Of a stretch of 64,000 nt of DNA, positions 5,230 through 23,500 are shown piece by piece. Within the stretch, counting starts at the first letter, position 1. The number at the start of each line of letters is the position of its first letter. The position numbers and the translations under genes were made by a program. The stretch covers positions 99,812-163,811 of the forward strand of contig NW_019217956.1 of assembly GCF_002571385.2 (NCBI RefSeq), in the 5' to 3' direction. This stretch comes from Stylophora pistillata (taxonomy: Eukaryota). The notes beneath the pieces are model-generated. The model saw only the letters and a program-made list of their open reading frames with translations. It had not been told where the DNA came from and did not search any database.

Positions 5230-6130
5230 CGTCTGCATCGTTACATAACATATTAGTGATGGAAATAGTTCAGCTGACCCAAATTGCTGGCTTGTACGAC
5301 CTCGAGCCACTTTGATTCCAACCTTTTACCCCTTTGGCTTTTTGATCCTTTCTTTAACTGTTTTTAACTAAAATATTTCATTGTTCTTTTTTTTCTTTTT
5401 TTCATAAGCACGTAGAAAAAAATATTTATATATAAATATGTATCTTTGTATTTTTAAGAAATCTTAATCATTGTCACGCAATATCTCTGTATTATTGTAA
5501 TCAAATTATTTTAGCAAATAGAAAGAATGCTGCTTTTTAAACCCCTTTTTGATCTTTTGAAGCTGTTGTAAGCTTCAGTGAGCAGCGGAAAATGCTTGGA
5601 GACCTGTAAAAATTGATTTCTACTTTCCATTTGTCATGTTATAACAAAAACAAAAAGAATGCATTGCGAGATTGAAGGCATATTTTAACTTCTAGGGCCA
5701 TGTTCCCTTCTAGGAATAGTGAAAGTAAGTTATTGGTAATATATATTTCCTTCAGTATCAAGGGAAAAGTACTCTGATTGTAAACAGAGGGTCAAATTTT
5801 AATGGTTTTGTTGTACAGAAAAAAATTTGCAGCTAGGTCAGTGGTGACGCTTTGGTTGCGCATTTTGTTATCTTGTTGATGGTACGACGTCACTCGCTGT
5901 GCTTATAAGTCTGCTCACAGACCTTTATGTTATAAAACTTTTGTTTTTTTCGTGGAAAAATTTTTAATTATTACTTCATCTTCCATTTCTTCATATGTAA
6001 GATAAAGTTATTTTTTCGACGAAGTGCTATTCTGAAAAATTGAGTCGCCCAACGTTTTTTATAAAAAATTAATTCATTTAATAAAAGTTTACAAGACTGC
6101 AAATTATTAAAAGTAAGAGCCTCATTCTTT

Positions 6131-6339: not shown

Positions 6340-7496
6340 CGACTTAAAAGATTTCTATTTTTAAATCATTTTTATATCTTACCTGTGCGAAAAAAGGCTT
6401 CTATAAATTTCAATGTTCCACTTGCAAGCGCGTAGCCTTGTAAGGTTTGTATAGTTTGTTATCAAGGGTGTATTCTTATATCAATATATAGAAGTATTTC
6501 TGCCTTAGTGTGAAAAGTTATGTGGACAATTGAGGCTGCGCGATAATTGTGGTAATTAATGTTAATTTTCGTTTCGGATAACTGAATGGAGTAAGTATCG
6601 ACATGGTATCGAGGAAGTCGTGATGACAAGTCAATTTTTTCGTTCAAATGTGTCCTACAGCTTTACCAACAAACCGTGAGTGGTACTGCTAAAATTTGTT
6701 GTAGAAAATTTTTTGCACCTCTGTTCCTGAACTTTTTAACTTTTTTAAACTGTTTTGTTCACATTTGTTTGAGGAATTTATGGTTAGGAGGCATCTAAAT
6801 CCTCGAAGCCTCCAAGTGGAGTATTTTTCAAATCCGCACACCATCACTCGTGGAATGTAACAGAATCGTCTTTCAATAATCACTACTAGGCTTCAAATTG
6901 TCGTGGAAATGGACTTGTCTTCACGATTTACTTTAGTATTTTCCCTATCCTAAATGCAATTGTAGATTGCGGGCGAATTGAATGACTGTTTAATACTGTA
7001 AGTTATTTACAGCGAATTGATTAAAAATCAAATGTATTGTGAGTATATTAACAAGTGTAATTGTGCATTTCTCGAAAGCTTTTCCAGCAGCTTAGATTTT
7101 ATTTTCCTCAAAGCTTTTCTTCTCTCCAACCTCCCCGCAAGTCGGTATTAGCCTTTATTATGCAACTGGCTATGCCCGTGGGCAACGTGAAGCGAATCCT
7201 GTCTTCTGATCGGCAACTCGAGAATCTTGCCTGCTCGGGATTACCCGCTTTGATGCCTCGAAAGGAAAACATTGCGTGGAGCGGACTTAGAAAGTTCGCA
7301 ATTTTTGGACCGTGTCGGCGATGTAGTCGGAAAAGACGAGAGAAGACAATCAAACAAAGAAAACGTAAACGACTCTTGAGGGTTTATTGTGCAAAAGGCA
7401 CAGTTAACTTTCTTTCCCGGCTCTCCAAATATAAACAAGTCATTCTTTATTCCTAATAAAACGAAATATTCCTGCTATATATATAATCAATCCTTT

Positions 7497-7655
7497 ATTA
7501 ACCAAGCTTGTTCAGTCAAGACGACTGGATATTAGCGTTGTTCTTTCTTTGCGTCAGTTAGGGACCTCGACTTCGTTTCGGTCTGTAATTATAAAATCGC
7601 AAAAAAGAACTCCCAACAATATCCAGCCACCTTGACTGAACAAGCTCGGCCATAA
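7497..7655. mobile_element. Short palindromic MITE remnant
   Basis: CAAGCTTGTTCAGTCAAG..CTGGATATT is the inverse of AATATCCAG..CTTGACTGAACAAGCT. Confidence 0.55.
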
Positions 7656-8679
7656 CGTATATGAAATGCAAGCGTCTTATGGGGGCCAGTTAACGTTAAC
7701 AAGCTCGCAATCGTTTATTCAACCGGCCGTGTTTGACTTAGAATTAAATTGGACGGTGTGGAGTGGGGGCGGGAAAGGCGAGGAAATTTCTATTGCACCA
7801 CCTTCTCCCCTCTCATTCTTTTTGGCCATCACTCGCCCCATTGTTAAAACTTTCTTTCTCTCCTGAGCTTTCCGCTGCTGGCAAAATTTAAGATGGCGGC
7901 TATATTTTCACTAGGCATGGAATTAATAAGCGTTTGTTCGCCAAAATACACCCGTCCTGCAAGCCATGTCAGTCCGTCCATGTTTTCTCTCCTTATGTCC
8001 CTTGTCTCCCTTATCCCTTGACTTCTTATTTTTCCCTCTTCCCTTCATTTTTCGCTCGTTCGTGCAAACTTGCTGCCTAGAAAAGGTTACGACTTCGTCT
8101 ATTTGTATAAACCGTGTGACGATAGGTTTTCGCGCATAAACAGACTTCTCGCGGAGATCGCAACAACAACGGGGGAAAACAGCTCGGTGGCCGCGAGACA
8201 ATTCGGCAGCGGGAACCGGAAACTCGTCACGATTTCCTAGTACACGGAGATCTACTTCAAGCGAACTTGTACGGATGTCAAGGAGAAGACCGACAGCTTT
8301 TGGTTCCACAATAGTTTATTTCTAATTCATGCCAATAAGCGACATGAACAGTAACGTTCTACTGTGACACGAAGGCGCACCATATAAGGAAGTCTTCCCT
8401 GGGAAGACCTATGCTCATTTGTCACTCATCGTTGACGTGCACGGGTCAAATTTAAAATGGCGGGCGATTTGAATACTCGAAAGGTAAGGTATACGAGAAT
8501 TCTTGTGCCTTTCCTGTCTTTACTTCCCCTAGATTTGAAATATCTTTATCTGACGCCAAGTAGTACTTCACGGATTAGAATTTTATTAGACGAAGGTTTA
8601 ATCGAGGAGCTGACCGGTTGGCTTACCGTGAACAACGAGGAGATCGTTCGAGTAGAGAAGCCACGAAAGAAAAATTGAA

Positions 8680-10515
8680 CGCCAGGTAATTTGCTTCCGG
8701 CCGAACGTAAGGCGCTGGGAGCCTTGAAACGTGACTCTGAGTTAAACCTCAGAAAGGCCGACAAAGGAACAGCAACCGTAGTCATGAACAAACGCGACAA
8801 AATTTTAGAAGGCCAAACTCTACTAGATAACAAAGATAACTACAGGCCTCTTGCATCACCCATGGTCAAAGAGACGGACTATAAGGTCAGATGACTTATT
8901 GCAGACCTCTACAATGGCAGTCATATAGACGACATGACTAAAAAATGGCTTTTTCAAACCCCAAATCCGCCTCGAATTCCAGAATTCTACACCCTAACAA
9001 AAATACACAAACCTTCCCCCGTCGGCAGACCGATAGTAGGGAACTTAAGCAGTCACGACGGCAACGCCACGGAAGACGTCGATTAAAAAATGAGCTTCTA
9101 CTTTTAGTTAGAATTTCGAAAATGGCTGCATGTGTTTACCGTCTCATAGGGCGCCAGACCTTAAACTCAACATAACGCATAAAAGTGGCATTGAGTTCCA
9201 AATGTAAATTAAAATAATTTGCCGCCGCCGTTTCGGTTCGCAGACGAACCAAATTTTGGGGATTTCACATTGTTGTTTTGCAAAGGACGGCTGAGAAATG
9301 TACAAAGTTTTAAAACGCACATGCTGGGCTATTGTTCTGCCAATTAGATCTATTGTTTTTCCACGTTCTCGTTGCCGTCGCCGTCGTGGTTTGCTTAAAT
9401 TCCCTAGTGTCAGGGTGTGATGGCCTTACAGAGAAACCTATCATCATTTGTCGACAAACTCCTTCAGCCGATAGCACAAAAACAAAAGTCGCATCTTAAG
9501 GATACTACAGACTTCGTCAATTTCATACGAAAGTCCCGGAGAACGTAAAAGTTGTTTCGATGGACGTTATGAGCTTATATACAAATGTACCAGAAGAGGA
9601 AGGAATAGACACTGTATGCAAAGCATACGAAATATACTACAGAAACGGAACTCCTATCCCTACACAACTACTAAAACAAGCGCTTAGTCTAATTCTCCAA
9701 GAAAATTCTTTCCATTTTGATGGAAAACACTACCTTCAAACACATGGTACGACCATGGGCACGAAAATGGCAGTCGCCTTTTCTAATATTTTCACCAACA
9801 AGGCAGAGAGAGAAATCCTTGACAAAAGCCTTTTCAAACGGCTTGTTTGGAAACGTTACATAGACGACATCTTCTCGCTATGGAGCCCAAACAAAGCAAC
9901 AATAGAACGTTTCATTGAAAAAGCAAACAACCATCGTCCAACAATAAAATTTATGGCTGAAATTTCTGATAAGGAATCAAACAACATTCCTGGACACGGC
10001 TACAAAGGCGAACGATTCGAAAAGGACGCAATTCATTTTAGTATACACACTATAGTTCCTGTCACCCACAAGGAGTTAAGAAAGGCTTCATAAAAGGGGA
10101 GGCCCTTAGACTTCTCAGAACAAACTCCTCTCAAACGATATTCCAGGAGAAAATTGCAAATTTTAAAGCGCATTTGTTGAAGAGAGGCTATCCAGAGGAC
10201 CTCATTAACACAACCCTCTCAGAGGTGAATTTCAAAAACAGGAAATTAGCTCTTCAACAGAAACCGAAGACGAGCCAACGAATCTTGCCTTTTGTTACAC
10301 AATACCAACCATCAGTGCCACACAGAAAGCAAATTCTCATGAAAAACTGGCATTTAATAGAAACACAACCACTACTGAGCGAACTATACAAAATCCGCCG
10401 CTCGTATTTTACAAAAGAGGGCGGTCGCTCAAAGACACTCGTGAGGGCTAAACTTTGAATAGGCTACTCTAAACACGCGCTAGGGAGTCGTGTAGGCCTG
10501 TCAACCCCATCTAAC
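8680..10515 (+). mobile_element. Penelope-like retroelement, copy A (decayed RT, no GIY-YIG endonuclease)
   Basis: Frameshifted RT fragments: LRKADKGTATVVMNK; FQTPNPPRIPEFYTLTKIHKP..GRPIVSGCDG; MDVMSLYTNVP; QTHGTTMGTKMA; WKRYIDDIF (catalytic YIDD); thumb KRGYP..PFVTQYQP..LVRAKL* (TGA 10456-10458). The 5' boundary is approximate. Confidence 0.9.
9038..9405. mobile_element. MITE inserted in PLE copy A, 3-bp TSD AGT (PIF/Harbinger-related)
   Basis: Imperfect TIRs AGGGAACTTAAGC..ACGACGGC / GCCGTCGTGG..GCTTAAATTCCCT. AGT is duplicated at 9035-9037 and 9406-9408. Removing the element restores CCG ATA GTG TCA GGG TGT GAT GGC (PIVSGCDG). Confidence 0.88.
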
Positions 10516-13500
10516 ACTGTAATCGCAGGATGTAGTCGCGGGATCATACTTACTATCGAACTTACTATCGAACGCGTGCTTCTATTGTTCTCTAAATTTA
10601 CAATATTTGAATAAGGACACAAAGGGGCGGAACAAGTCTCCGAAGTAAAACGATTCATGCTTAAATATTCCATATGTTTCTATGGCGGAAAGAATGTCAA
10701 AATTAAGAAAGCAGATACAATAAACTATAGGCCTTTAACAAGAACAAACTTGAATGAGAATTCGCAGCGCTAACGTTATAAATATGCCTTCTTAATTACG
10801 GTCGAGCAGCTTAGGAAATAAGAGTGAGAGGTAATTTCAAATTTCTGCTTATCAGCGAGATGTTTGTGTTAAGTTTAGTATAAACGGCAAAGTACGAGCA
10901 AAAATTCAGCTGCCAACCATCATGAGAACCAATTTTGCAGAAATTAAAGGTCATTAACATTTCTATTAACCTAAAATTTAACTAGTAATGAACAACAAAA
11001 GTACCGACATGTAGGTGTACAAAAAAGGGCAAGAAACAATTTAAAATCTTTAAGTTGATTCCTTTTAAAAACTACTGTGGCCTTTGCTATATTTTTTTAA
11101 ATCACTAAAACGAAAGAACTCGAATGAACTTGAATAAAACCGGAAATGATTTAATCTGAAAAGTTACGAATAGATATGTCCCAAAACAAACACACGGAAA
11201 GAGGACTAAATTTTCCCTAACGCATGTCAGTCCTTCGTTCTCTCTTCTTAGTGTCCTCTTCGTTTCTTCCGTTTGCCCTCTTCCCTTCCTTTTTACGCTC
11301 GTTCTTGCAAACTTGCTGCTTTGAACAGATTACGGCCTCGCCTGCTTGCAGAAGCCATGACTTGACATTTACACCTTGTTTGTGCGAGTTTCCCAGCAAA
11401 ATGCACCATCTCATGAACGTTGGGAAAGGATCGAGATGGGACTTCCCCTCTACATGAGGGCGTTGTCTCCTTCACTTAAAAAAACGCCACGAATTGTCAA
11501 AAGGTAAGCGACTCATGCATTTGAGAACCTTAATACCATATTTTCGCCTATTTTTGACTTAATCTTGATTCCACGCCCATTTCCTAGATAGGAAATAGGC
11601 AAATACCGGCTCCAATGTCACCTCTTGGTTTCCTGAGTTGAAGTATGTTCGAGTTGAACTCCAACACCACCACCACCCTTCCCATGGTTGCGAAGAATTT
11701 TCACACTTCCCAGCACAATCGATATGTTCTTCGGAGTTGATGCCAACCAAGAGAAATGCAGTGGTTTACCTTAAAACGTGTTTACTCGGCACTAAAAAAA
11801 TCAAATACATCCTCTTTAGTAGGGGAAATAAATTTATGAAACAGCAGGGGAAAGCCGCTTATAGGGTAATCCTGCCAAAGTTCGCAATAGGATCTAATAA
11901 ATGTGTTTACAGAGCAGTGTGCTCTGTGGAACTCAGAAATAAATATAATAGCTATTTCATGATTTATCTTTTAGTTTCAAAAAGATTGATTAGTAAGAAG
12001 GAAAGCAGTTTGTCTAGGATGAACCCTGATACTTTCTGGAAATATAGCTCGTGTTACGTTTGCCTGTCTGTCACTTTTACTCTTTCAGTCGTATGATCAC
12101 GTTTGTCTCGCCACGTTTGACTTTCCGCCTTGAGTATACTAACATCGCAGTTGAGGATTATCAAATAACATGTTCCTAAAATTTGCGGATATTTTTCGAA
12201 TCACAGAAAAATTCCTTTGGTCGACAAGTGCATTGATTACCATCACCAGTGCATGAAAGAAGAAAATAATCTTCACTTCGTGCAGATGTTGATTGGTATC
12301 TATGTAACTTGTTTGTTTTGTGCTTGCGGCTTGTGGCGTGAATATTTGATCAAAGTGATCTCTTAGGGTAACGCTACACACAAAGGAAAACACTTTGGCG
12401 ATCTTGTCTAATTGAAGGGGACGACTGAAGAATATTCTGAAGGTATTTTAGAAAATAGACCAAAAAGTAATTTGCTGGTTTTCCTTATTTCCTTATTACG
12501 GTTCGTGAAGAGAATTATGAGCCCGTGAAATAGGGCTTACTCTTCATTCGAGGAAAGTGAGAGCTATTATAGCTTCATTGAAACTGAAATTTTATTCTTT
12601 CGATAACAGAATCGCACCTTTCGTCGAATTTTATTTGTTTTACTTAATCAGCATGGCATAATATTAATCGCATGACGTTCTCCGAACCGGCCGATGACTC
12701 GAAGACATCCTATTTATATTGGGGAACAGTAGAACAGAAAGACGTGAGAAAGGAAGCAGCATTGTGAATTTCCCTCAGTTTTTCTTAAAAAATCGTTAAT
12801 AATTAACCGGTTTTCTTGAAAAAAAATTAAAACCCTTGGGTAAGCGTGCTGTAAAGAAGGAAAAATACGCTCGTAATTTCGTATTTTGGCCCAACTTTGG
12901 CTGAATGGCACTGAGTCGCCAACATATAACTGTTGTTGATTATTTCCATGTTTGGTCATTTTTCAATGGTGAAAGATTTAATAACCAGTCGCGGTATACT
13001 GAAAACTGCGTGTGAATTGTGTTATAGCGAGCAAAGTTGGTATTCATTTGGAAATTTGTGTGAAAAAAATATAGCTATTTAGTCAGTGTATACCTTTCTC
13101 AGAAAATCACTTCTCGTGCACTGTCTTCAAATGTGTCGTTAATAATTCTTATTCCGTTGTGTTTTAAATTTTGATGTGCCAAAGGTGTAAGCAGCTTAAC
13201 TGACCAAAGAAAAACATTGCCAGCTGTTTAAAAGCACTGGTTAAAAACAATAATGGCCAGCGGTGAACTGGGATGAATGATTTATAATCTTTGTGTGGTG
13301 AGTTTTTTCGCCCTCAAATTGACATCTTTATGCTGAAAAAAAAAAAAAGAGATACTCGGTATTCAGTTTTAAATCTTAACGTTGTTGAAAAGAAGGAAGG
13401 AGGGGGGGGGAGGGAGAGTTATTTTGGCGGGTTCACGGAACGACAAGGGGACGTTTATTCTCTTCAAAATAATTTCGCATGTGATTTCGTCGAAGGTCTA

Positions 13501-16800: not shown

Positions 16801-17478
16801 GGACTCCGACAAAGGAAAGGGCTCAGTCTGAGGAGGCTTTTTACTAAGCTGATTTTTAAATCTACATCCCATTTATAACAACATACCGCCAACTCATTAT
16901 TAACTTGCTTTTCTCTAAGATTTTGGATATTTGACCGACAGCTGGGATTGTAATGCATGAAGATTTATTTTTGTCTCAAGTGTGTTTGCAGAGCATGTAA
17001 GACTCAATCAAATATCCCATGTTGAACAATCCTGTTTCATTTCGTAAATTGCGCGTGTCCTTCCTATCTCACCTATATTTATTCAGTTCAGATCTTATCA
17101 GAAACCATCAAATAATCAATTTGAAGCGATCACTTCAGTCAAATAGAAAGAGAATGCATGGAATACTACTCAGGCAGCATTCAACTGTGGTCAATAGTGT
17201 CTCTTATCCAGACCTTCCACGGCCAATAGTTACACGTTGGGATCTGATTACGAGATTAGTCTTATCGACGCTTAATTTTTTGAAACCCCGGATTACATTT
17301 TCATCCCAGGAACCCTTTCCGCTTGCTTTTTCACCCCTTCAGAGTTGCGCCTTGGCTGCTAATAAAGAAAATATATGAAATTTCTGTTTTGCTTGGCACC
17401 AGTTAGAGAGTGGGAAAGGGGTCACATCCTTTCTTGAAACACCATATTTCAAAAGATAACCTCTAACCACAGATAATT

Positions 17479-17572
17479 GTAGGTTATTCCACGGTTGGTG
17501 AGCGCGTACGATTTTTATTCACAACGAGTGAATAAAAATCGTACAAGTGAACTAACCGTGAAATAACTTATT
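17479..17572. repeat. ~90-bp imperfect palindrome, probably the end of a non-autonomous DNA element
   Basis: TAGGTTATTCCACGGTT..GTACGATTTTTATTCAC / GTGAATAAAAATCGTAC..AACCGTGAAATAACTTA. Confidence 0.65.
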
Positions 17573-18520
17573 TATTATATACATACCGAGATTCATAAGC
17601 GAACAGAACTCAGCGATAAACATATCTTTATTTTCTTTCAAAGGAAAGTAACGCGCNTCCAACAAACTTTTCACTCCTTCACGTGCGCGTGTGCACTCAG
17701 TCTGAAGATAGCGGATCTGGTAACAGCATTCCTATCCAACGCCCTGTTGTTATTTATTCTTATTGGAAACTTATTGTGTTGGTCGGGATCCCTATCACTT
17801 CAAGGAAGGTCGTTGGATTTTTAGCTCATTCTTCAGTTGAAAAAATTTAATGCAATTTTGTCGTAAGTACTTATAATCCCATATCAGAGGGAATTACAGA
17901 CTAGGAGTTCATTACCGACCGTAAAAAATGTTTTGTGATTGATCATCGGGGTTACGATGAGAAATGAATGATTCATCGTATGCCTCACGATCTAGAATTT
18001 GTACCTTCATGCTATCAACCGAACATCATGGCGCTTGGCTTTCGACTGCTGGAGCGCTAGTCTTCGTCAAGCGCCAGATTACATGCCGACGGGCGTATTG
18101 CAATCGAAATTCCGCCATCCTCGATATTAATAGCTTGACTTTTCAATTGGCAGTGACCTTGATAACTCGTGAGACAACGATTAACATTCATTTATCAAAA
18201 ATAGAAATGCTTGTTTCGAGTAATCTTTTTTACGCACGAGCATTATGATCATCGAACAAATCTTGGCATCAATTATCGCAAGGTCCGATCATGCGCAAGC
18301 GGTTGTTTGTTTGTTTGTTTGTGTTTTGAGATGTTTCCTTTGAACCCTTTCGAATGGGTCTCTGTAAAACGAGGACCGGATAGATGCGGATGGCGGATGC
18401 GGATAGAAAAATTGGGATGAAAAATCGCGGATGGAAAAATGCGGATAGAAAAAAAAATCGGTCGGAAAAAAAAAAAATTAAACTTGTCCTTACAGTCGAA
18501 CCCCGCTATGTCGAACCCCC

Positions 18521-19390
18521 GCACAAAAACAAAAGTCATATCTCAAGGATACTATAGACTTCGTCAATTTCATAGAAACCACGAAACTCCCGGAGAACGA
18601 AATACTTGTTTCAATGGACGTTACGAGCTTCTATACAAATATACCACAAGAGGAAAGAATAGACGCTGTATGCAAAGCCATACGAAATATTCTACAGAAA
18701 CGGAACTCCTATCCCTACACAACTACTAAAACAAGCGCTTAGGCTAATCAGTCTCCAGGAAAATTCCTTCCATTTTAATGGAAAGCACTACCTTCAAACA
18801 CATGCTACGGCCATGGGCACGAAAATGGCAGTCGCCTTTTCTAATATTTTCATGAACAAGGTAGAGATAGAAATTCTTGACAAAAGCCTTTCAAAACCGC
18901 TTGTTTGGAAACGTTACATAGACGACATCTTCTCGTCGGTGGAGTACAAACAAAGCAACAATAGAACGTTTCATTGAAAAAGCAAACAATCATCACCCAA
19001 CAATAAAATTTACGGCTGAAATTTCCGATAAGGAAACAACATTCCTAGTCACCTACATCTACGCAAAGGCGAACGATTCGAAAAGGACGGAATCCTTGAT
19101 GTGCGTACTCATTTTAACTGACAAACTGAGACATTTTAGTATACACCATAGTTCCTGTCACCCACAAGGAGTTAAGAAAGGCTTCATAAAAGGAGAGGCT
19201 CTTAGACTTCTCAGAACAAACTCCTCTCAAACAATATTCGAGGAGAAAATTGCAAATTTCAAAGCCATTTGCTAAAGAGATGCTACCCAGACGACCTCAT
19301 TAACACAACCTTCTCAGAGGTGAATTTGAAAAACAGGAAACTAGCTCTTCAACAGAAACCGAAGACGAACCAACGAATCTTGCCTTTTCA
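18521..19390 (+). mobile_element. Penelope-like RT, copy B (internal fragment ending at assembly N)
   Basis: Alignable to copy A from AQKQKS to the start of the LPF motif. Contains GGCACGAAAATGGCAGTC and CGTTACATAGACGACATC (RYIDDI), with several frameshifts. Confidence 0.88.
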
Positions 19391-19391
19391 N

Positions 19392-20543
19392 GTCATGGTG
19401 TGATGGCCCTACAGAGAAACTGTCATCATTTATCGACAAACTCCTTCAGCCGATAGCACAAAAACAAAAGTCGTATCTTAAGGATACTACAGACTTCGTC
19501 AATTTCATAGAAAATACGAAAGTCCCGGAGAACGTAATACTTGTTTCAATGGACGTTCAGCTTTTATACAAATATACCACAAGAGGAGGGAATAGACACT
19601 GTATGCAGAGCATGCGAAGTATTCTACAGAAACGGAACTCCTATCCCTACACAACTACTAAAACAAGCGCTTAGGCTAATCAGTCTCCAAGAAAATTCTT
19701 TCCAGTTTAATGGAAAGCACTACCTTCAAACACATGGTACGGCCATGGGCACGAAAATGGCAGTCGCCTTTTCTAATATTTTCATGAACAAGGTAGAGAC
19801 AGAAATCCTTGACAAAAGCCTTTCAAAACCGCTTGTTTGGAAACGTTACATAGACGACATCTTCTCGTCGGTGGAGTACAAACAAAGCAACAATAGAACG
19901 TTTCATTGAAAAAGCAAACAATCATCACCCAACAATAAAATTTACGGCTGAAATTTCCGATAAGGAAACAACATTCCTGGACACCTACATCTATGCAAAG
20001 GCGAACGATTCGAAAAGGATGGAATCCTTATGTGCGTACTCATTTTAACTGACAAACTGAGACATTTTAGTATACACTATAGTTACTGTCACCCACAAGG
20101 AGTTAAGAAAGGCTTCGTAAATGGAGAGGCCCTTAGACTTCTCAGAACAAACTCCTCTCAAACAATATTCGAGGAGAAAATTGCAAATTTCAAAGCGCAT
20201 TTGCTAAAGATAGGCTACCCAGAGGACCTCATTAACACAACCTTCTCAGAGGTGAATTTCAAAAACAGGAAAGTAGCTCTTCAACAGAAACCGAAGACGA
20301 GCCAACGAATCTTGCCTTTTGTTACACAATACCAACCATTAGTGCCAAACCTAAAGAAAATTATCATGAGACACTAGCATTTAATAGAAACACAACCATT
20401 ACTGAGCGAATTATACAAAAATCCGCCGCTCATATCTTACAAAAGAGGGCGATCGCTCAAAGACACTCGTGAGGGCCAAACTTTGCATAAGCTATTCTAA
20501 ACACGCGCTGGGGAGTCGTGTAGGCCTGTCAACCCCCTTTTTT
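19392..20543 (+). mobile_element. Penelope-like RT, copy C (with 3' end)
   Basis: ORFs 19541-19909 (YTNIP..QTHGTAMG..WKRYIDDIF) and 20030-20377 (thumb), then LVRAKL and the same 3' tail as copy A. Confidence 0.9.
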
Positions 20544-23500
20544 ACTGTAATGACATGTTTAATGTTTTTTTTTTTTCCAACCGATTTTCTTTTCTACCCG
20601 CATTTTTCCATCCGCAATTTTTCATCCGCATTTTTCTATCCGCATCCGCCATCGATCCGCATCTATCCGCTCCGCGTTGTACAGAGACCCCTTTCGAATG
20701 TCAGCAGAAGCGATCAGGTTGCAAGTTCTCCTCAAAATTTTAAACATTATCCTGCTAAATGCGGACGGTCATGAGAATGCGCAAAATTATTAGCGAATGC
20801 CGGAAGATGTTTAAATCAAATACCAAATTCTAGCTCCTGACTGATTTTCAAGGAAATGAGGAGATAGTAGAATGGAGAATCATGCAACGGATCAGATCTC
20901 GCAAGATAAAGGATTAAAACTGTTTAAAATGTGATAGTCATCTGATCGACTAGAAATATTGGTAACCGGGCAGAAAAATCAAAACTGTCATCGGTCAGAC
21001 AAAACATTTATGAAATTAGATAACGCTTCCAGCTCTCACTTTTTATGAAGAGCTTCATTCAAAAATAATTTTCTGATTTCATGCTCCAGGGCTACTCGAC
21101 GGAAAGCTGAAGAACGTTTTTAAAACAATTTTAACTGAGAGGTATGTTTACCATAGAGCTTTTTGTATATATCCGTAATTATATGGGCCTCAACCAGTAC
21201 ATCCTATACGTGATTGCCTGTCTATTAGCACTAGTCATACTGTTCAGTTTTTCTTTTATTTTCGAGATTTTTCTTAATTCACCAAAGAACATGCTTTCAT
21301 TTCTCGCTGTACACTCTTTTCTGTAACAATGAACTTGTTTAGCATCATTTGGAATAGATTTGATCGGGCGAAACTGAAGATTCTTGGCTACATTGTACAT
21401 AATAAAAAGAAATAGTTAATCATTACTGACGCCATTAAACTTCTTACGCAATCATGATTATTAATCGTTTGAAATGATCAACTATCGTGAAAACTTTCTT
21501 TATTTCTTTTTTTATCAGAATTTGGTTTGTTAGAAATAATGCCCCCTCTGCCAGGAAATGAATTGAATTTATCAAACCTCTTGAGGGTAAAATAGAGTAC
21601 GTACATAAATTTATGTTATTCAAAAATTAAAACTGAAACTTTGCATGCATGTATATCGTGAACGTATTCGCCCAATTTCAGCCTCAATATTAATGGAAAA
21701 TATTCCTATATCAAAAAAGAGCGCATTGACACCAGTTTGAAGTTATTCGTGCTTGCATGAATTTCGCCAAACCAGCCTGATGCACGAATTACATCACAAG
21801 AGTGGACACTGACCCTATCTCGCCTCGACATTATCATTATTTTCATGGGACGTGAATGGCAAGCGTTTAATTTTGTGGCGTGGCAGAACCCCGACTTTCA
21901 CCTAAGTTATTGTAATATCAGCTATCAGGTAGGAAGTTTTTTCCCTGAGATATTGAAAAATTGAATCAAGATTCATAGAGAATAAGCTGAAATTTTAAGA
22001 TGTCGAGTTTGGCACCGTTTTTCCTTCTCGCAACTAGAGGAGGATCGAGGGAACTGCTCGTGATCAAGGAACTCAGTGTTTGTAAGAGGATCCCATATTC
22101 TCGATCAGCGGCTTGCCATCAAGTCGAAATTTATGCAGTTGTAACATGCGAAATAATCTTGTGCATGGTTAACGCCGATTGCTTTAAAATTTTCGAATGG
22201 CTTTGGGAGTCTGGGAACGTACATGTGCTTGCAAGAAGCATTAGCACGTGCTTGCTTGCCTCAAGTGCTCATACTTGTTTTGAGCGTCAAATGAGTCATT
22301 GTTAGACTTTAGCATCCTTTGACAAGAAATTTTAGCCGTGATCTTTTTCTGAAAATTCCATTTTTTTTCGTTTTCTAATTTTGTTTGTTTGTTTTGGTGT
22401 CATTTCTTTTCAACTTCCGTTTCCAAATTCCTAAGAGTATTTTGGTCTTCTTTTCCTTAGAACTGTTACCAAGGTTAACTTTCTTTTGCAAATCAGGGCT
22501 GAAAGGAAATGAATCCTTTGAATCAGTGGTTTAGGTGTGAAATATAAAAAGGAGCAATCCATGACGTATTTCCTCCAATTTTACGTCAGTTTCGCAAATG
22601 CATCAGATCATTGTCCTTCATATTGAAGCAACAGTCTCATAATATGGTCTTTTATTTTGCCCAAATAAAGTAGTTTCTTTTGTCTAATTTGAGAATATCA
22701 GGAATTTCATGTAATATCTGTGTGTTACAGAAGTTAATGGGCAGGAAATTAGGTTAATTAACGAGAAGCAAAGTCAAACAAACAGCTTCGGAACAAACAT
22801 GAGGCTTCGGGTGCGGCAAAGAACAAATTTTCACCTAATTGCCTGGTAATCCCTTTTAAGGTTGCGATGAAAATTGTACGTCAATTTTGTCAACATCTCC
22901 GAAAAATTGAGTACCACTTAGAGCAAAAGAATTATGTTTTTAAAGAGCGAAATCCAATTTAAATCAGTTTTTTGACAAGTTTACCCCCTCGATTAGTCTA
23001 GTCTAATCGAAGAGAGCGAGGAATGACCTGGAACAGATCATCAGTGGTCGGCGTCCGTGAAAATATTCCAAATAATTGTGGGTGTTATTTGCGAATGATT
23101 TATTAAAGCTTAAGAATTAAAAGTAAATAACCTGACTTATCAAGCGGTGAGTCACTTCAGTTCTTCATTTTGTCGCCTGTGTATATGTGACCTGAGTGGG
23201 ATTATAATTGCTGTTACGGCCTTTTGGCGCAGATAATGAATTGGAGGGCCTCCAACAGCCGTCGCACAGAGAGACTTGTGGGTTGAAGTGACACTAAATT
23301 CATTGATATCTTTACCTGATGAAACAAGATCGTTATCAATATCCCTTAAAACACTGTTATTTGTTGACGTGCTATATGACATAAAAAACGCGCGGAGACC
23401 GGGAACAGGCCTGATTGATTGTTCCACGCGACAAATTCAAAAGGTGAATTGTTCGAGTAGAATTTTTGAGGCTTTTTAGTGTTTACAGTATGATTAAATC

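Follow-up and report, generated by a model that had tools for sequence, protein, structure and literature searches.

The window analysed here, 64,000 nucleotides of the coral Stylophora pistillata (contig NW_019217956.1 of assembly GCF_002571385.2, positions 99,812 to 163,811), carries at 8684-10517 on its forward strand the remains of a Penelope-like element (PLE), hereafter copy A. Our results indicate, with a probability of about 80%, that copy A is a defunct remnant, truncated at its 5' end, of a PLE family in which the lack of any endonuclease (EN) is the native state. The reverse transcriptase (RT) of PLEs is closely related to telomerase, and the interstitial spread of these elements is conventionally tied to a GIY-YIG nuclease, nuclease-less PLEs being regarded as largely confined to telomeres. 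The family described here is of interest as a nuclease-less lineage which is under purifying selection and has young intact copies in related corals, and which is dispersed in chromosome interiors with a conserved box at its 3' end and a ribozyme at its 5' end.

The idea of an EN-less family, put forward in an earlier note from the letters of the window alone, is borne out by intact open reading frames (ORFs) of relatives. Six full-length proteins of 835-878 aa all end in ...SLKD(I/M/V/T)LV(R/K)AK(L/I), the end of the RT thumb, and two shorter NCBI gene models (735 and 745 aa) have the same end. A word search that used the thumb portion of a natural ORF returned 283 proteins, and among the 120 listed the thumb motif is the end in 87, the others being frameshifted or cut models. 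The named relatives, which come from Oculina, Montipora and Porites, have only RVT_1, DUF8422 and HTH_animal as precomputed Pfam matches. No GIY-YIG domain was found by Pfam in P0041, P0116, P0122 and P0130, and the positive control, the EN-bearing (EN+) PLE L077 of the same genome as the window, scored 31.5 bits for GIY-YIG against a cut-off of 22.6. L077 (2659-4098, G000 contig C24) is an open 479-aa frame with RT, CxxxCxxC linker and GIY-YIG, and has a near-identical copy, L078. A custom linker plus GIY-YIG profile, built from the tails of 60 EN+ relatives, matched the EN+ controls L077-L080 (E 1e-27 to 1e-37) and otherwise only an unrelated position in L062; it gave nothing in the window, the family loci or the 120 relatives. 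Its silence in all six frames of 7001-13000 and 17001-23000 agrees with the earlier reading of copy A and of copy C described below, and neither a Cys-rich linker nor a GIY-YIG motif follows LVRAKL in any frame.

The comparison with L077 places the missing part precisely. P0041 is 37% identical to the L077 protein over 320 aa and the alignment ends at LVRAKL/LVTAKL, from where the L077 protein runs on for 158 aa with CGRNCATC, a CxxxCxxC linker, and NLIYLIQCNRCNLQYIGET, the GIY-YIG motif. At the other end of the protein, no nuclease was detected in the ~280 N-terminal residues of full-length relatives by Pfam, by the custom profile or among protein-atlas features, the atlas giving only low-score DUF8422 look-alikes for this part. 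Since these N-termini are intact and give no nuclease signal, an N-terminal nuclease of the Naiad type is excluded. The intact relatives therefore carry neither the C-terminal GIY-YIG nor the N-terminal EN that the earlier note had named as findings that would contradict it.

Copy A itself is decayed, with reading frames interrupted by frameshifts and stops. BLAST against two sets of 30 genomic copies placed its start at 8684 and its end at 10516-10517, so that it reaches from the N-terminal RT motifs to the 3' terminus. Its broken frames retain PLE-type RT motifs in the order ADKGTATVVM, FYTLTKIHKPSPVGRPIV, HGTTMGTKMAVAFSNIF, YIDD, HRPTIKF and the thumb end SKTLVRAKL. The conserved N-terminal region of the RT (LLPAERKAL...ADKGTATVVM...FYTLTKIHKPSPVGRPIV) occupies 8691-9037 on the forward strand, where ORF pieces align with residues ~385-500 of intact relatives such as P0041. 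The fingers and palm follow at 9405-10093 (+), with an ORF piece at 9560-10093 and the catalytic YIDD at 9857-9868. The thumb, corresponding to the precomputed Pfam HTH_animal region of relatives, lies at 10094-10455 (+; ORF 10174-10458) and ends with ...SKTLVRAKL, exactly where the alignment of P0041 to the EN+ element of the same genome stops. A TGA stop at 10456-10458 (+) comes right after LVRAKL; it represents the native ORF end of the clade, since intact relatives stop at the same residue, and stops are also present here in L071-L076. The remaining 59 nt (10459-10517, +) form a 3' untranslated region (UTR) with the terminal box GGCCTGTCAACCCCATCTAACAC at 10495-10517, and this family 3' terminus is common to 29 genomic copies, a 30th locus being N-masked at that point, and to intact elements of other coral assemblies. 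The natural ORF closest to copy A, that of L032, gives a weak Pfam RVT_1 match and is 81% identical to copy A over residues 1-158 of a 177-aa query.

The two halves of the RT in copy A are separated by a private insertion of 367 bp (9038-9404, no strand assigned) which lies outside the element proper, all other copies joining 9037 directly to 9405. RNA reads cover this insertion on both strands at a depth of 200-1000 at ~2% sampling, and the pile-up has sharp limits, with diverse loose read ends at 9037 and 9406. Because the reads pile up on exactly this block, it is a separate, unrelated and very abundant repeat. Position 8684 was considered as the 5' end of the family and rejected, since a walk upstream through other copies shows it to be a truncation in copy A and L032; two more apparent 5' ends further upstream proved to be truncations of individual copies as well. 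The 5' part is indeed missing from copy A, as had been suspected, and the family runs ~1.3 kb further upstream, where an N-terminal region typical of PLEs (NLSNKELTNDQINLLAKGLKFIPTP...) and an acidic/basic segment lead to the ORF start codon.

The family has a fixed 3' end in the Stylophora genome. A search with the last 350 nt of copy A, of the kind the earlier note had advised, gave at least 295 candidate 3' parts in the 398-Mb assembly, and all 40 candidates scored (89-95% identical) have a single terminus, ceasing to match at query positions 335-350 with ...GGCCTGTCAACCCCATTTWACA. When copy A was compared by BLAST with 30 loci, the 3' end was constant at window positions 10508-10523 and the 5' ends were scattered (10181, 10124, 10081, 10034, 9925, 9888, 9812, 9572, 9471 and others); beyond the terminal ...GTAGGCCTGTCAACCCCATTT(A/T)ACA, the DNA is unrelated. 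At least ~12 loci combine this one 3' end with unrelated flanks and differing 5' truncations, which upholds the claim that separate insertions share a terminus. As judged from these alignments, a fixed 3' end with varied 5' ends is the pattern of target-primed reverse transcription with putatively abortive cDNA synthesis. RNA reads cover the family on both strands, their depth climbing toward the 3' part and dropping past ~10500. The family is also interstitial, as had been claimed: copies lie in mid-contig, far from contig ends, and telomeric arrays are absent, with no (TTAGGG)3 in 80 loci and no (TTAGGG)2 with one mismatch in the window. Some long open frames of 533-684 aa from the genome search were discarded as runs of N.

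The organization of intact elements could be established in other coral assemblies. They are ~2.8-3.1 kb long and consist of a 5' leader, one ORF of 835-878 aa, and a 3' UTR of ~60 nt that closes with the conserved box GGCCTGTCAACCCCATTTWAC. The ORF begins with an acidic/basic N-terminus (DUF8422), probably a coiled-coil, and continues through the PLE RT to the thumb end LV(R/K)AK(L/I). In L071, two copies of 2792 bp that are 99.4% identical, both with an intact 878-aa ORF, lie at 286-296 kb of a 462-kb contig adjoining a transferrin gene; each has an 87-nt leader, the ORF, and a 68-nt 3' UTR ending with GGTCTGTCAACCCCATTTTACCA. The elements of L072 and L075 close with this terminal box too, and L073 and L074 have a recognisable version of it, so that it is conserved between lineages with a protein identity of only ~57-69%. 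A consensus fold of the 3' UTR gave only a weak 5-bp helix with no covariation. The ORF is under purifying selection, with dN/dS of 0.16-0.17 between intact lineages and 0.40 between the two young L071 copies. The two L071 copies are adjacent, with 263 nt between them, and the full copy of L074 is preceded by a truncated one; these may be tandem or partial-tandem arrangements, although a proper pseudo-long terminal repeat (pseudo-LTR) could not be demonstrated.

The 5' leaders of L071, L073, L074 and L076 contain a canonical type-I hammerhead ribozyme (AGCAA-CUGAnGAG-stem II-CGAAAC-stem III-GUC-UUGCU) ~25 nt upstream of the ATG (55 nt in L076), and the same motif is found in a short derivative family of the Stylophora genome. 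Over seven sequences, 98.9% of the cells that should pair do so, compared with 12-46% in slid controls, and all three helices show a compensatory pair, one apiece. The Rfam scan over whole loci reported no hammerhead; the ribozyme emerged by eye, by a scan of a short stretch (HH9, E = 5e-4, under the gathering score) and by pair counting. It is not seen in the window copies because these are 5'-truncated. CCAAT-like and TATA-like boxes upstream of the ribozyme are common to L071b, L073 and L074, as seen by eye only. Other hammerhead motifs with different stems occur at L075:954-1002 and 1445-1493 (491 nt apart), at L063:4414-4463, and at L073:5818-5869, the last 205 nt downstream of the element stop codon, and this suggests that the extra hammerheads belong to other ribozyme-bearing repeats or neighbouring units.

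The RT phylogeny, which the earlier note had also called for, places the window family in a coral clade of entirely EN-less members. HMMER with P0041 over 1.84 billion representatives gave 37,384 matches, of which the top 150 were combined with the coral set; 132 rows had enough RT coverage, 69 of them ending at or just past the thumb and 63 having a linker plus GIY-YIG tail. FastTree (132 rows) and a quick IQ-TREE run (56-row subset), both unrooted and built from these database rows, agree in topology. The window family, represented by the L032 natural ORF, falls in the coral clade with a support of 99-100 (SH-aLRT). Together with a second all-EN-less clade (100), the coral clade forms an EN-less group with a support of 92-93, comprising 42 representatives at 50% identity in the large tree. 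P0130 of the second clade clusters with many proteins of the pearl oyster Pinctada imbricata encoded on chromosome-scale contigs. The EN-less group is sister to a mostly EN+, linker-bearing clade (100; joint node 96-98), and the EN+ family L077 of the same genome lies in the other major EN+ branch. The EN state is labile, because the tree needs at least 5-10 changes of it.

Several observations weigh against the view of a natively EN-less family. Some gene models labelled EN-less could be truncated predictions. In the Stylophora genome, no intact copy was found among the copies examined, all being decayed, so that the evidence of activity comes solely from other assemblies. Many copies arose secondarily, by duplication at the DNA level within other repeats, and independent insertions are thus far fewer than copies; loci that share both flanks (L006/7/14, L016/17, L020/24/25/26, L027/28 and L008/10) must accordingly be taken as secondary copies carried in larger repeats. 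The read-end data list no discrete RNA 3'-end pile-up at 10517. Target-site duplications (TSDs) are absent from the junctions of ~10 old 5'-truncated copies and of the two young L071 copies, which is uninformative, and the near-full-length copy L066 (reverse strand) has an 89-nt TSD, ~92% identical, at 5579-5667 and 8335-8423 as oriented. The flanking repeat of L066 had first been taken as a 95-nt pseudo-LTR, an assignment that was rejected; it is a TSD because it directly adjoins both junctions and occurs nowhere else in the genome. A TSD of this size is unusually long for a retroelement insertion. The source of priming, whether existing breaks or the nuclease of co-resident EN+ elements, is something we infer.

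Taken as a whole, the TSD pattern is weak evidence for irregular, nuclease-independent priming. In the favoured scenario, the RT would bind the 3' box and start cDNA synthesis on a DNA 3'-OH of foreign making. This 3'-OH could come from a pre-existing nick, break or gap, or from a nick by the GIY-YIG nuclease of co-resident EN+ PLEs, and synthesis would often abort, leaving the 5' truncations.

Alternatively, the family may contribute only its own RT and borrow a GIY-YIG nuclease in trans from co-resident EN+ (Neptune-like) PLEs, inserting by ordinary nuclease-driven target-primed reverse transcription. Candidate GIY-YIG matches in the genome number at least 1590, of which 90 have E ≤ 0.001 and several lie within long open frames, and L077 has an open RT-linker-GIY-YIG frame; moreover, the clean 89-nt TSD of one near-full-length copy implies staggered cuts. 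However, the EN+ families of the same genome belong to a different major branch, with an RT identity of only ~37-43%, regular TSDs are not seen in other copies, and PLE nucleases normally work in cis, within the RT protein. We therefore consider such borrowing unlikely, albeit worth keeping in mind. A different kind of dependence would be that of a non-autonomous derivative in which a 3' deletion has joined the thumb of an EN+ PLE to its last 60 nt, RT and EN being supplied by a full-length master. Although short internally deleted derivatives of the family do exist in the genome (L048-L060), no EN+ element with the family sequence was found, the nearest EN+ proteins being 37-41% identical; purifying selection has maintained, in different lineages, intact 835-878-aa ORFs with their stop at one and the same residue, and the EN-less state is common to the whole deep clade of 42 representatives. 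This explanation is largely refuted and very improbable.

The absence of a nuclease could also be only apparent, if the family were a Naiad/Chlamys-type PLE whose N-terminal GIY-YIG is merely missing from the truncated window copies. Cnidarians do have Naiads, whose ORFs likewise terminate with the RT (PMC8557442), but the ~280 N-terminal residues of full-length relatives have only DUF8422, and the family has a canonical hammerhead, which Naiads lack (PMC8557442). The intact N-termini refute this possibility and leave it practically no chance. The earlier note had further considered that all copies might derive from DNA-level duplication of a single truncated insertion. This is true of sub-groups, including that of copy C described below, which moves in a carrier bounded by terminal inverted repeats (TIRs) with 9-bp TSDs, and several groups of loci have both flanks in common. 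For the family as a whole it is refuted, and its likelihood is minimal, by at least ~12 copies that differ in their 5' truncation points and are unrelated in either flank, and by the same architecture in other species.

The native EN-less state that we favour has precedents in kind. Athena and Coprina are EN-less PLEs generally confined to chromosome ends, with reverse-complement telomeric repeats beside the hammerhead, and canonical hammerheads are present in all PLEs but Naiads and most Chlamys (Craig et al. 2021, PMC8557442). EN-less offshoots are on record in EN+ clades too, namely the Neptune-like MjPLE01 of kuruma shrimp and Chlamys PLE-X (cited in Craig et al. 2021, PMC8557442), and EN-less lineages must use other sources of 3'-OH (Craig et al. 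2021, PMC8557442). The coral family falls into this category of EN loss within EN+ clades (Craig 2021, PMC8557442), and it belongs to the canonical, non-Naiad PLEs: a PLE-type RT with N-terminal motifs and the L(V)xAKL thumb is present together with a hammerhead, the RT trees group the family with PLE-like RTs, and the N-terminal GIY-YIG with CxC domain that marks Naiad/Chlamys was not found in relatives. Like MjPLE01 and PLE-X, it has a canonical PLE RT without a nuclease and stands beside linker-bearing EN+ elements. It differs, in a comparison with MjPLE01 by description only, in its hundreds of dispersed copies, with young intact copies in other assemblies, and in being no single isolated family: its clade is deep, with 42 representatives at 50% identity, and the members named are cnidarian and bivalve.

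With Athena and Coprina the coral family shares the lack of an endonuclease, the hammerhead and the PLE-type RT. In contrast to their telomeric location and to the telomeric repeats at their 3' end, next to the ribozyme, it lies in mid-contig, has a unique 3' box, and bears its ribozyme in the 5' leader. Its nearest EN+ relatives are probably of the Neptune type, with which RT and thumb can be aligned up to L(V)xAKL and which also have a hammerhead. A Cys-rich linker precedes the GIY-YIG domain in the sister EN+ clade and in the EN+ family of the same genome, whereas the coral family is without the whole linker and GIY-YIG module (~150 aa), its ORF stopping where the linker would start. Non-LTR retrozymes, which are non-autonomous PLE derivatives with a hammerhead, resemble the short derivative L048-L060, which has an intact hammerhead and PLE fragments and is partly in tandem, but the coral element is a protein-coding parent rather than a non-coding rider.

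Our literature search found no description of a deep, prolific, non-telomeric EN-less PLE clade with defined termini. It is tempting, albeit tentative and somewhat doubtful, to speculate that such a clade of hammerhead-bearing PLEs, large and old and so far found in stony corals and a bivalve, is nuclease-free by norm rather than by occasional loss and has colonised chromosome interiors to hundreds of copies by priming from its 3' box on DNA ends made by the cell or by other mobile elements. Such a clade might, in addition, serve as the autonomous partner of non-coding riders with a hammerhead. The database tree suggests that aquatic invertebrates harbour many more EN-less lineages than "occasional" losses would imply. 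With its intact natural ORFs and defined termini, the family is a concrete system for studying how an RT obtains primers when it has no nuclease of its own. In annotating genomes, one should not write off RT-only PLE models that end at LVRAKL as truncated predictions.

Elsewhere in the window, tblastn with pieces of copy A found two further stretches, copy B (18521-19388, +) and copy C (~19392-20543, +). Copy C has the 3' terminus of copy A but was truncated independently, its flanks and truncation point being unlike those of copy A. The A/B/C alignment confirmed TGA in A and TGC in C directly after LVRAKL, and A and C, ~88% identical, remain alignable for only ~55-62 nt more, up to ...GTAGGCCTGTCAACCCC and ~8 nt beyond, before becoming unrelated, much as the earlier note had described. 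Copy B, which had been regarded as a separate insertion, is instead a local tandem duplicate of part of C: direct repeat families D1-D5 reveal a period of 932 bp, the duplication spans 18521-20320 with a single N at the joint (19391), and B and C are 87-97% identical across the repeat blocks, or 95-97% over the three longest.

Copies B and C lie within a carrier that is a MULE-like DNA transposon bearing a PLE fragment. Its left TIR (18356-18496, -; 141 nt), recognised from inverted repeats I1-I3, and right TIR (20544-20690, +; 147 nt), with the inner end ACTGTAATGACATG..., are flanked by a perfect 9-bp TSD, CTTTCGAAT, at 18347-18355 and 20691-20699. The carrier (18347-20699) is non-autonomous and has B and C as its interior. 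The same composite carrier is found at L019 with a different perfect TSD, CCTGTGAAG, and it has therefore transposed as DNA; the B-type duplication is missing at this sister locus. The earlier idea that ACTGTAAT marks a transposon end is right in that the motif belongs to a transposon TIR at copy C, and wrong in that it is the inner end of the TIR and not the transposon terminus. The 3' flank of copy A (10518-10525) also opens with (AC)TGTAAT, as does the inner TIR end beside copy C, and nothing further is shared after the homology between A and C ends. The motif is absent from ~11 other independent junctions of the family. Copy A is in addition flanked by direct repeats of ~88 nt that are 81% identical (8030-8116 and 11272-11359), probably two copies of another repeat family.

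Several derivatives of the family were also noted in the Stylophora genome. A short non-autonomous form (L048, L050, L051, L054-L057 and L060) has an intact hammerhead joined directly to internal PLE sequence (e.g. L051:1116-1169), followed by ~240 nt of unrelated tail. Its copies are younger than those of the parent because they are 94-99% identical, and contig C248 has two of them 775 bp apart; the arrangement of hammerhead and PLE fragment resembles a retrozyme. At L008:879-2468 (-), an unrelated upstream ORF of ~340 aa runs in frame into a PLE fragment truncated at its 5' end, the fused ORF having 529 aa in total and no Pfam match, and the flanks of this locus are common with L010. The family 3' box was not found in the abundant 251-bp tRNA-like repeat of this genome, which forms a tandem array at L062:548-1123 with a 251-bp period and tRNA-like modules that give three Rfam tRNA matches.

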